64,000 nt of DNA from sequence record MK568540.2; one strand, 5' to 3'. This document shows positions 11,474 through 49,303 of this stretch, in pieces; position 1 is the stretch's first letter; each line of letters begins with the position of its first letter. The notes below the pieces were generated by a model, which ran no database searches, was not told the DNA's origin, and saw only the letters and a program-made list of their open reading frames with translations. Position numbers and translations under genes: made by a program.

Positions 11474-12325
11474 TTAATAACCGAGCAGTCGTCGCGTACC
11501 GCTTGACAATTCTGAGTCACTCTGCATTTCTAATTTCTCAATGCTTGGCCAAATGGTGAGTTCCATGTCATTAATAACCCACACCTTACCATTGATGATT
11601 GCGATCTTCTGCTCATCGTCAAACCATTGTTCGCCTTCTTCATCGTGATACCACTCTAAGTCGTAGAATGCATCATACCAAGCATCTGACATGCGAATCG
11701 GTCCCGATGTCAATGTAACCTTACCGTCTTTTACAGTAAGTCGATTGAAGTCATTCAGTAGCCAACTACCATCACCTTCAGTTACTTTGACAATGGCTGC
11801 GTCGTTAACTTCTCGTAAGTCTAGTATTTCAGTACCCCATGCAGTGTCATATCCCGTCGGCTCGTCTGTATTCACTGCAATTGGTTTAATGCGTGTCATC
11901 ACGAAAGAATCACCGTAAATAGTCAATCTGAACCCCAGTTCCTTACTGAATCGCAGTGCCATACGTTTGTATAACTCAAAACGCTTATCAGCATCTGACT
12001 CGTCAGCGTCATCAAACGCGCTAAACTTAATGCGATTTACTGCATTATCGTTCATAAAACGCTTGATTTCTGCAATCACCGTCGCAAAAACCATCATAGC
12101 TTTTTTAGGATCACCTTTTGCCAGGTTGTAATCGAAAGTTGTCGCACCCGCTGCCTTGTGCATGAAATCCACACCTAGGTCTTTTTTAGATTCGTCATAA
12201 TACAGACCAATCATATACTCAGCGCCGTCTATTTCAAAGTAACTCTGATTACCACGTCGTGCTGTTATAGTTGCAGCGCGGTTAAACGCTTCTGTTAGTT
12301 CGTTTTGATATTCGCTAAATTTCAT
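11474..12325 (-). CDS. Predicted internal head protein, paralog family member 1
   Basis: Leader MKFSEYQNELTE; shared domain VFATVI...IKFSAFDDADESDADKRFELYKRM. Confidence 0.6.
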   Translation of the reverse strand: MKFSEYQNELTEAFNRAATITARRGNQSYFEIDGAEYMIGLYYDESKKDLGVDFMHKAAGATTFDYNLAKGDPKKAMMVFATVIAEIKRFMNDNAVNRIKFSAFDDADESDADKRFELYKRMALRFSKELGFRLTIYGDSFVMTRIKPIAVNTDEPTGYDTAWGTEILDLREVNDAAIVKVTEGDGSWLLNDFNRLTVKDGKVTLTSGPIRMSDAWYDAFYDLEWYHDEEGEQWFDDEQKIAIINGKVWVINDMELTIWPSIEKLEMQSDSELSSGTRRLLGY

Positions 12326-12326
12326 T

Positions 12327-13247
12327 TTAAGATTCCATTATTTCTGGGTTTAACCACGGCGCGTCGAATGCATTCACGTATTTGGTAAACGCCGCATCGT
12401 CGGTGTATATTTTTAGACTTGTTTGACTAGTCAAGACGATATAGAAGTTTTTGAATGCCCCAACCAGATATGTTCTATCTTCTTCGGGACCCTCGCCATA
12501 GTCGAAAATTGGGTGCTGTAGTGCTGCTAACCAACCTTCCCTGTCAGACATTTCATACACAACGCGATTTACACGTAACCTAGCTGCAATTTCGTCAGCC
12601 GCTTTTACAACTGCACGACCTTGCCCTAGAACACCACTAATCATCGAACCATCTTCAACTTCAAACGCTCTTACAAATGCATATGCATTGGCGTGAGATA
12701 AATTAACTTCAACATGGTCGCTATGTTCTTCAAACCCGACTGGACGACGTGCTCGACGTGAAAAGTCATCTACACGTTGTTGATAACCCACATCATACAC
12801 AATGAATTCACGACCTACGTTTCTGTAATCATACTGAGGGAATTCTCTAAGTTTCGCCTTTGTCATGATCTTATACAGTCTGAGACGTTTATCTGCATCA
12901 CGCTGATCAGCGTCATTGAACGCGCTATATGTTATTTGAGCAGGTGAATTGTCTCTAACAAAACTGAAAATAGCATCGACAACCGTTGATAATACGATAC
13001 GAGCTGTTTTATCATCTTTCTTAGTTAGATTATAACCACTACCATCAAGAGCTTTGAACGACACCTCAGCCTTCATAGACTTCATCCCGTTCGGTTCACG
13101 TATAATACCTTTCTGAATGTCTATTTCATAATAAACACCATCAACTTGAAACGCATACACGTTTAAATTTGGTAACTCTCGGACGAGTTTATATTTCGCA
13201 GGGCGATCTAACGACTCGTTGAGTCTTTGATATTCGCTAAATTTCAC
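12327..13247 (-). CDS. Predicted internal head protein, paralog family member 2 (GTG start)
   Basis: Leader MKFSEYQRLNE; VLSTVV...ITYSAFNDADQRDADKRLRLYKIM. Confidence 0.6.
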   Translation of the reverse strand: MKFSEYQRLNESLDRPAKYKLVRELPNLNVYAFQVDGVYYEIDIQKGIIREPNGMKSMKAEVSFKALDGSGYNLTKKDDKTARIVLSTVVDAIFSFVRDNSPAQITYSAFNDADQRDADKRLRLYKIMTKAKLREFPQYDYRNVGREFIVYDVGYQQRVDDFSRRARRPVGFEEHSDHVEVNLSHANAYAFVRAFEVEDGSMISGVLGQGRAVVKAADEIAARLRVNRVVYEMSDREGWLAALQHPIFDYGEGPEEDRTYLVGAFKNFYIVLTSQTSLKIYTDDAAFTKYVNAFDAPWLNPEIMES

Positions 13248-13537
13248 TCTAAAAATTCCCCGTCTGGTATCGTGTCTTTGTCGATATTACCATTCAATGG
13301 TAGATCATCATCAAGACCGACATCTATTGATTTTAAATGTATTTCTAAGTCGTCGATTGATTGTTCAGTATAGAGATACTTGCTTCTGTAATCGAAAAAT
13401 GAGTAGCAATCTTCAGTGTATTCTACTTTCAAAATCGTTTCATGACCTGCATGAACATATACTACGGGGTCGCCGAACGCGCTAATATCCGTATAACTCA
13501 TCTTCGTGTTTTTCAATAATGCAATTGCTTCTCTCAT
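13244..13537 (-). CDS. hypothetical protein
   Basis: ORF track; stop overlaps the next start. Confidence 0.6.
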   Translation of the reverse strand: MREAIALLKNTKMSYTDISAFGDPVVYVHAGHETILKVEYTEDCYSFFDYRSKYLYTEQSIDDLEIHLKSIDVGLDDDLPLNGNIDKDTIPDGEFLE

Positions 13538-13540
13538 AGA

Positions 13541-48389: not shown

Positions 48390-48392
48390 TCG

Positions 48393-48418
48393 AAAAAGGG
48401 AGCAAATTGCTCCCTTTT
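48393..48418. terminator. Bidirectional terminator
   Basis: AAAAAGGGAGC-AAATT-GCTCCCTTTT. Confidence 0.85.
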
Positions 48419-48421
48419 CTT

Positions 48422-49303
48422 TTATCGAATATCTTCTAGTTCATAACCCCAGATATTACTAAAATCTTCTTCTGATTCGACGTAATACAATGTATCTTGC
48501 TCACATAAAATCATATCACCTGCATCAAGCGCCGCACCTTTTTCACTAATATCAAATGTACGACCTGTTTTAGTGCGAACTGTAATATCACCTAGCATTG
48601 ACAGCCAAATGTCAGCCGAATCTAAGTTATTGAACTTACCACGCGGAGTTGTTGCTTCAATGTGAATAACATCACTCGATTTTCGCTCTATGTAAACTCG
48701 ACCGTGTGGCAATCCAAATCGAATGAAATCTCCGTCGTTGTCTAACCAGAATAACTTAGCCCAAGTGAATGCGTTAGTATTTGGGAAAATAACGTACGTT
48801 AGTTCTTCTTCTTTGTGAATCCCGTCGTTATGCAGTCTGCGAACTTTCGGTGGGTTATTGTTCTTCAATGTGAAGCTATTTCCCATGACGTGAACCGTAT
48901 AGTCCATCTTGTTCGCGTATCGCTCAGCCATACGTTTGTACAGTCGGAAACGTTTGTCTGCATCATTGCGATCTTCATCTGAGTACGCACTAAACGCAAT
49001 CTCATCAGGGTTAATCTCAGACGCTTTTTCAAACGTAGCAGCTAGAATCGTACTTAATACTGTCATGGCATCTTTAGGCGATCCTTTTGCAAGCGTGTGC
49101 GTCCAATTGCCTGTTTCACGATCTTTTCGTTGGAAAGCTACATATATGCTTACACCGCGTGGCGTTTCGCGATCTTGAATCGTTGCTAGGTATTGGGTCC
49201 CGCCTACTGTGAAACTAGCTTCATTGTGCATAGCATCCCATCTATATGGCACTGGTCGGTCGAACGCTTCAATTAACGTTTCTCCATGTTCAAAAATGAT
49301 CAT
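48422..49303 (-). CDS. Predicted internal head protein, paralog family member
   Basis: Leader MIIFEHGETLIE; VLSTIL...IAFSAYSDEDRNDADKRFRLYKRM; perfect late promoter TATAAATA at 49328-49335. Confidence 0.65.
   Translation of the reverse strand: MIIFEHGETLIEAFDRPVPYRWDAMHNEASFTVGGTQYLATIQDRETPRGVSIYVAFQRKDRETGNWTHTLAKGSPKDAMTVLSTILAATFEKASEINPDEIAFSAYSDEDRNDADKRFRLYKRMAERYANKMDYTVHVMGNSFTLKNNNPPKVRRLHNDGIHKEEELTYVIFPNTNAFTWAKLFWLDNDGDFIRFGLPHGRVYIERKSSDVIHIEATTPRGKFNNLDSADIWLSMLGDITVRTKTGRTFDISEKGAALDAGDMILCEQDTLYYVESEEDFSNIWGYELEDIR

Follow-up and report, generated by a model that had tools for sequence, protein, structure and literature searches.

The closest described counterparts of the proteins analysed here are Alt and the internal proteins (IPs) of phage T4, which stay in the filled head and enter the host with the DNA. 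A second class, that of the polyvalent or MuF-type head-packaged multi-domain phage proteins, has reportedly been set out by Iyer et al. in 2017 and Jamet et al. in 2017. The T4 capsid-targeting sequence (CTS), MKTYQEFIAE, is cut once, after its final glutamate (PMC8442874), and this ten-residue leader alone loads foreign proteins. Processing of the T4 protein IPIII is governed by residues 8 and 10, and a short propeptide is removed from the N-terminus of Alt (PMC9026906). Here we analyse four paralogous genes, P0001, P0002, P0003 and P0004, in a stretch of 64,000 nucleotides (the window) of record MK568540.2, which derives from Vibrio phage Va3, a KVP40-like and T4-related member of Schizotequatrovirus, Straboviridae. 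Positions 11000-14000 of the window match the Va3 record with 100% identity and equal coordinates. All four are named hypothetical proteins in that record. KVP40-type phages are broad-host-range Vibrio phages that are used as models and as biocontrol candidates; to our knowledge, their injected-protein complement has not been described beyond Alt. The analysis below leads us to propose that the products of the four genes are probably internal (ejection) proteins, which would be packaged into the phage head and trimmed by the prohead protease.

Results

Kinship of the four paralogs

The four open reading frames (ORFs) were verified, and all of them lie on the minus strand (Table 1). The motifs that a preliminary description of this DNA, made from its letters alone, had reported to be shared by P0001, P0002 and P0003 indeed align in register. 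P0003 is similar to P0001 (BLASTP, E 3e-23) and to P0002 (E 2e-15, with an alignment that extends to residue 243, in agreement with the C-terminal block that had been noticed in these two proteins), and all three match PHROG 6387, a family annotated as being of unknown function, over its full length (about positions 1-300 of 301; E 1e-106 for P0001, 1e-118 for P0002 and 6e-126 for P0003). P0004 matches PHROG 13195 over positions 1-483 of 483 (E 0, 1079 bits); it has no BLASTP similarity to P0001, and is linked to the other proteins by profiles only. Against a profile of four domain sequences it scores 71.5% (E 3.6e-5), and the hhalign comparison of a 32-sequence family alignment with eight P0004 orthologs gives 96.2% (E 2.4e-9, 144 columns), the alignment covering the whole N-terminal domain and leaving an insert of about 26 residues between the F-S-A strand and the R-x-x-L-Y helix. 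A hidden Markov model (HMM) of 246 domain copies, which was built without the P0004 family, matches P0004 at E 2.9e-7 among 2019 ORFs, and a second hhalign run with the 246-copy profile gives 96.6%. The order of secondary-structure elements is equal in the AlphaFold models of P0003 and P0004; as the N-terminal domain of the latter is modelled with low confidence (predicted local distance difference test, pLDDT, about 57-60), the fold comparison rests on this order and on the profiles, and not on superposition. Since three profile tests link P0004 to the family, the fourth member, described beforehand as a divergent one, is real, and its N-terminal domain is, judged by these profiles, a truly divergent copy of the same domain.

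The family is not limited to these four genes, as had been assumed. The domain profile detected a fifth paralog in VH7D, the sister genome (91% shared words with Va3) in which we searched beyond the window. In this protein (306 aa, PHROG 16075), the domain is C-terminal and follows an internal L-T-E. Its ortholog in 6E35.1a, a related phage of the same genus-level group, is labelled 'Defense?' in the published table and is present in particles. Every paralog forms a stable orthologous lineage among the Schizotequatroviruses. The P0002 and P0001 genes are adjacent and only one base apart. The corresponding locus of 6E35.1a has one PHROG 6387 gene only, which indicates that the pair reflects a lineage-specific tandem duplication or a loss.

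Leaders, prohead protease and late-promoter motifs

Each of the four proteins starts with a short leader in which Leu (-3) and Glu (-1) are invariant, and which thus ends in hydrophobic-x-Glu like the leaders of T4-type capsid-targeted proteins. Stand-alone relatives of the domain open with near-identical leaders (MKTYKEFMQE, MKSYKEFITE), and T4 Alt, which is packaged and processed by gp21, starts with MELITE followed by LFD, which is the junction found in the family. A gp21-type protease is encoded by VH7D (Peptidase_S77, PF03420, E 2.1e-99). The exact T4-type late-promoter motif, TATAAATA, occurs only twice in the 64-kb window, and one of these two copies precedes P0003. One-mismatch variants (NATAAATA or TNTAAATA) precede P0004 and the gene of an Alt-like ADP-ribosyltransferase that is convergent with the P0003 gene.

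Counterparts in virions

The particle proteome of 6E35.1a (PMC12028318, Tables S4 and S8) lists all four family counterparts together with Alt. The spectral counts are 16/61 and 37/51 for the two PHROG 6387 proteins, 58/109 for the PHROG 13195 protein, a mean of 11.5 for the PHROG 16075 protein and 122/233 for Alt, as compared with 90/145 for the major head protein (PMC12028318). In addition, a homolog in phage PA5oct, which consists of a stand-alone domain of 141 aa, is annotated as a virion structural protein by electrospray ionization tandem mass spectrometry (ESI-MS/MS).

The shared domain and its predicted fold

The shared N-terminal domain comprises about 135-140 residues. A profile search of 1.84 billion representatives yielded 2488 proteins at E<=1e-3, which are mostly encoded by large phages and have the domain by itself, in tandem or joined to enzymes; both relatives whose gene neighbourhoods were viewed belong to large phages. 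Many relatives carry two to five tandem copies as detected, and the proteins reach up to 2215 aa. The Pfam model DUF6934 (PF22028) is passed by 38 of 43 large relatives, with scores of up to 162 bits, and the partner domains in these large relatives include canonical GNAT (in five to six of the 43), Zeta toxin, methyltransferase, amidoligase, nucleotidyltransferase and the head domain of poly(A) polymerase. P0001 and P0004 have no match to Pfam DUF6934, and the other window proteins stay below its cut-off; the link to DUF6934 is therefore transitive only. On this profile evidence, the domain is a distant relative, or divergent branch, of Pfam DUF6934. Searching the literature for DUF6934 or a KVP40 virion proteome, we found no paper directly on this family.

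The AlphaFold (AF2) model of P0003 has a pLDDT of 88, and its N-terminal domain (residues 15-153) is modelled as a four-stranded sheet that is followed by a long helix, a strand, another long helix and a hairpin. Of the best 50 VIA matches of this domain, about 45 belong to the GNAT superfamily, with Z scores of 6.7-8.1 and alignments of 96-112 residues at a root-mean-square deviation of 3-4 A. The top Foldseek matches in PDB are also GNAT proteins; none of them reaches E<=0.001, and the family profile has no match among PDB sequences. Among the GNAT enzymes in these two sets of fold matches are AcrVA5, an anti-CRISPR acetyltransferase of a phage, and AtaT, a toxin. The model thus predicts a GNAT-like sandwich that does not have helices alpha1-alpha2, and the domain, which had been called uncharacterised, is better described as a distant DUF6934 relative with a GNAT-like predicted fold. 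At the site of the pyrophosphate loop (GNAT Q/R-x-x-G-x-G/A), the broad family consensus reads T-G-x-G-D-A, and the Va3 copies read K-G-x-P-K-x-A or K-K-D-D-K-T-A. An invariant Thr, Arg and Tyr are located in the V-F-A-T-V and R-x-x-L-Y helices, which would correspond to GNAT motifs A and B.

C-terminal parts

The C-terminal domains of P0002 and P0003 are homologous (subfamily profiles, 92.8%, E 4e-7). The C-terminal part of P0001 has a weak link to the P0002 group (36.6%) and none to the P0003 group in the same profile comparison. Hence, a common module is combined with different C-terminal parts, as had been described, with the qualification that two of the three C-termini in this group are homologous and the third is weakly linked. 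An ESM Atlas search with the P0003 C-domain (residues 155-293) returned only unnamed viral clusters, below 0.8. The C-terminal half of P0004 is very acidic (30% D+E), and the HEAT-like repeats reported for it are supported by a sub-threshold match to Pfam HEAT (20.4 bits; cut-off 23.5) and by alpha-solenoid matches, residues 237-483 (pLDDT >90) matching designed and natural helical repeats with Z 5.6-7.4.

Relation to Alt

A comparison of the domain with the N-terminus of Alt, which the preliminary description had suggested, gave structural matches to several Alt proteins and weak sequence evidence for the Alt-like protein of Va3 itself. In a Foldseek search of BFVD, the P0003 model matches Alt-type ADP-ribosyltransferases of the T4-like phages HY03, Melville, CF1, phiAS5 and SP18 (E 2e-3 to 2e-2); its BFVD relatives with probability 1.0 also include Zeta-toxin, ParB and deaminase fusions. 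The 246-copy HMM touches the N-terminus of the Alt-like protein at E 0.0096, Pfam DUF6934 does so at E 0.052, and the domain HMM has no match in T4 Alt. The family and the Alt-like family align by hhalign at 1.1% (32-row profile) or 19% (246-copy profile), and the Alt-like protein was for this reason not counted as a member; it may contain the domain once more, in a very divergent form. According to the T4 record, alt.-1 and alt.-2 (5066-5451 of the T4 piece, minus strand) go back to an old duplication that involved the first part of alt. The front end of Alt has thus been duplicated in T4 too, in parallel with the paralog family of Va3.

Neighbouring genes

The second exact TATAAATA of the window is located upstream of a gene for a capsid-like protein (43803-44702). 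This gene forms a late-gene block with that of a gp55-like sigma factor (43282-43794) and with an ORF of 481 aa (41827-43272, minus strand), whose product starts with MLGNFDSFLSE and so has a leader ending in L-x-E. A predicted methyltransferase (41172-41819, minus strand) starts, at its annotated start, with MKKFGEFLTE; as this is nearly the T4 capsid-targeting sequence, the enzyme may be another packaged protein.

Table 1. Positions of the paralogs, their parts and associated motifs (window coordinates, unless residues or another genome are given)
Feature	Position	Strand	Description	Basis
P0001 (Va3_020)	11474..12325	-	283 aa; PHROG 6387	
P0001 leader	residues 1-12	-	ends L-T-E (10-12)	sequence
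P0001 N-domain	~residues 13-150, 11876-12289	-	DUF6934-type; C-part acidic, kinship uncertain	
P0002 (Va3_021)	12327..13247	-	306 aa, GTG start; PHROG 6387	
P0002 leader	residues 1-11	-	ends L-N-E (9-11)	sequence
P0002 N-domain	~12798-13214	-	C-domain homologous to that of P0003	
P0003	48422..49303	-	293 aa; PHROG 6387	
P0003 leader	residues 1-12	-	ends L-I-E (10-12)	disordered in AlphaFold model
P0003 N-domain	~48854-49267	-	predicted GNAT-like; beta-rich C-domain 48425-48853	
P0004 (Va3_037)	21012..22463	-	483 aa; PHROG 13195	
P0004 leader	residues 1-15	-	ends L-D-E (13-15)	sequence
P0004 N-domain	~21879-22418	-	divergent, with ~26-residue insert	profiles
P0004 C-half	~21015-21755	-	very acidic HEAT/ARM-like solenoid	sub-threshold HEAT, structural matches
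Alt-like ADP-ribosyltransferase gene	46761..48389	+	convergent with P0003 gene	
Alt-like protein leader		+	ends L-N-E at residue 9	sequence
Alt-like protein, residues ~10-135	46788-47165	+	possibly a very divergent domain copy	
TATAAATA	49328..49335	-	exact late-promoter motif, 24 nt upstream of P0003 ATG, just past terminator hairpin	
TCTAAATA	22492..22499	-	late-promoter-like, one mismatch, 28 nt upstream of P0004 ATG, after terminator hairpin	
CATAAATA	46722..46729	+	late-promoter-like, 31 nt upstream of Alt-like ATG	
Fifth paralog	VH7D 165-166 kb (1459-2379 of that piece); ~95 kb in Va3, outside the window	-		

Discussion

The leader, the domain with its predicted fold and the presence of counterparts in the particles of a related phage together suggest that the four proteins are probably carried in the head and injected with the DNA. 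Of the roles that had been offered for the N-terminal domain in the preliminary description, packaging or ejection is the best supported one, by the CTS-like leaders, the late-promoter motifs and the orthologs in virions. In the mechanism that we propose, the paralog genes would be expressed late, and the short T4-CTS-like leader would target the proteins to the scaffolding core of the prohead, where a T4-type prohead protease (gp21 homolog) would cut after the conserved [L/I]-x-E. The mature protein, now beginning with the DUF6934-type domain of about 135 residues, would remain in the filled head and reach the host cell along with the DNA, like T4 Alt and the IPs. After injection, the domain would, according to the model, most likely bind a ligand or target via its GNAT-like cleft, with further binding surfaces being supplied by the C-terminal part, be it the acidic beta-rich domain or the acidic HEAT-like solenoid. 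The domain might, less probably, catalyse acyl transfer.

Several observations weigh against this proposal. The virion evidence concerns orthologs, and packaging, cleavage and injection of the Va3 proteins themselves are deduced from these orthologs and from the motifs. The particles of 6E35.1a were purified by polyethylene glycol (PEG) precipitation only, and contain a few metabolic enzymes at low counts (PMC12028318). The motif L-x-E-[A/S/L]-[F/L] is also present ahead of 195 of the 235 (83%) internal repeats in the polyproteins, as well as ahead of the C-terminal domain copy of the fifth paralog, which means that it may cap the domain structurally, instead of or besides being a cleavage site. 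The mature proteins are acidic (isoelectric point, pI, 4.2-5.7), as opposed to the basic T4 IPs, and no late-promoter motif was found upstream of the P0002-P0001 pair. With regard to the domain itself, P0002, P0003 and P0174 reach 17.1, 16.3 and 14 bits, respectively, with Pfam DUF6934, for which the cut-off is 27 bits, and the Z scores to GNAT proteins are middling, in a range in which only a common arrangement may be shared.

The interpretation that the proteins are ordinary, non-virion proteins detected as a result of carry-over would fit the PEG precipitation and the presence of dUTPase, thymidylate synthase and ligase in the same table (PMC12028318). However, the contaminants have counts of 0-10, whereas three of the family members have counts of 16-109, comparable to those of head and tail proteins, with the PHROG 16075 ortholog at its mean of 11.5; furthermore, all four family members are present together with Alt, the homolog in the unrelated jumbo phage PA5oct gives the same result, and the leader and late-promoter motifs fit packaging. 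We consider carry-over to be the least probable of the explanations weighed here. Only marginally more credible is the view, put forward at the outset, that the family consists of polymorphic effectors in which a constant N-terminal domain is fused to C-terminal payloads that diversify rapidly in step with variable host targets. Among paralogs the C-terminal parts do have an identity of only 13-18%, versus 33% for the N-terminal domain, and other partner domains are found in P0004 and in the fifth paralog. Yet two of the three C-domains (those of P0002 and P0003) are homologous, the identity of C-domains between orthologs is 35-92%, only somewhat under that of the N-domain, the published dN/dS (nonsynonymous to synonymous substitution ratio) of orthologs in the 6E35.1a clade, 0.0003-0.21, indicates purifying selection (PMC12028318), and the paralogs constitute stable lineages. 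The claim of diversification driven by polymorphic host targets is thus not supported by these data.

Two other explanations, though unlikely, deserve more weight than these. The proteins could be true GNAT acyl-CoA-dependent acyltransferases, packaged or not, with each paralog modifying a different host target. This would agree with the dominance of GNAT enzymes such as AcrVA5 and AtaT among the fold matches, with the G-x-G-x-A turn that the family consensus keeps ahead of the long helix, with the invariant R-x-x-L-Y in the following helix, for which we infer the alignment to motifs A and B, and with the canonical GNAT domains that stand beside DUF6934 in some of the large relatives. On the other hand, no window protein matches the Pfam GNAT models, the glycine turn is degenerate in P0001, P0002 and P0003 as well as in P0004, the model lacks the acceptor-site-shaping helices alpha1-alpha2, the Z scores are just 7-8, and enzymes do not usually form arrays such as those of up to five copies in the relatives that were examined. 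An explanation of similarly low probability is that the domain is a structural or assembly part of the head core, either a scaffold- or DNA-associated filler or a cargo-loading adaptor analogous to MuF, and that it has no function once the host is infected. In favour of this, the domain is all that proteins with many different fusion partners share, the orthologs are abundant in particles, the domain is neutral to basic (pI 7.1-9.3), and it is possibly the front of Alt-type proteins as well. Nevertheless, as the ten-residue leader of T4 suffices to load foreign proteins (PMC9026906), an adaptor of 135 residues is not required, arrays consisting of little but this domain would make no sense for an adaptor, and the modelled GNAT-like cleft with its invariant Arg and Tyr suggests ligand binding. 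We favour the view that the four proteins are internal head proteins injected with the DNA.

The metagenomic relatives include polyproteins of two to five DUF6934 copies with L-x-E ahead of the copies, which are sometimes interleaved with canonical GNAT, Zeta-toxin, methyltransferase and nucleotidyltransferase domains. Either the prohead protease would cut such polyproteins at the internal L-x-E into single units, or the motif belongs to the domain; in the former case they may be protease-processed cargo. A far-reaching extension, to which we assign a low probability, is that the DUF6934/Alt-N-type domain is the basic unit of an ejection-protein system that is widespread in T4-like and jumbo myoviruses, with polyproteins being cut at L-x-E into single GNAT-like units. 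If four to six proteins are indeed head cargo, they would make up a defined group of proteins that could act in early host takeover or in anti-defence, and the shared domain would be a sequence handle for packaged proteins in thousands of large-phage genomes. The domain may also account for the unannotated front part of Alt-type enzymes.

Comparison with known systems

In the model of the domain, strands and helices follow one another from beta2 to beta7 as they do in the GNAT superfamily, and there is a helix-strand-helix similar to motifs A and B; the domain differs from the superfamily by having neither alpha1-alpha2 nor a match at the sequence level, and by a cofactor loop that is not conserved in Va3. 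The window proteins align to the same region of the Pfam DUF6934 model as its members, but are below the cut-off or unmatched, and the Pfam entry carries no function. As in polyvalent or MuF-type proteins, the long relatives string the domain together with Zeta-toxin, methyltransferase, GNAT, amidoligase and nucleotidyltransferase domains; in contrast to them, there is no MuF domain, the repeated unit is DUF6934, and the Va3 proteins are short and consist of two domains.

The similarity with T4 Alt is found in the MELITE|LFD junction motif, in the matches of the P0003 model to predicted structures of several Alt proteins, and in the gene order, since the P0003 gene adjoins the alt homolog, with the order ligase, P0003-type gene, alt in 6E35.1a. 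Unlike Alt, the four Va3 proteins do not have an ADP-ribosyltransferase domain, and the sequence evidence for the domain in the N-terminus of the Va3 Alt-like protein is weak (E 0.0012-0.05, probability 1-19%). The T4 proteins IPI, IPII and IPIII have no sequence or fold relation to the Va3 proteins, and are small and basic, whereas the latter are acidic proteins of about 31-53 kDa with leaders of 11-15 residues and a cleavage that is predicted from their sequence. What the two groups have in common is the short leader, which is hydrophobic at position -3 and has Glu at position -1, the T4-type prohead protease (present in VH7D), the occurrence in virions, seen for the orthologs of the Va3 family, and the character of non-essential-looking, lineage-variable paralogs. 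The four proteins are thus most likely new, hitherto undescribed members of the T4-type class of head-internal proteins, built on a DUF6934-type, GNAT-like domain.

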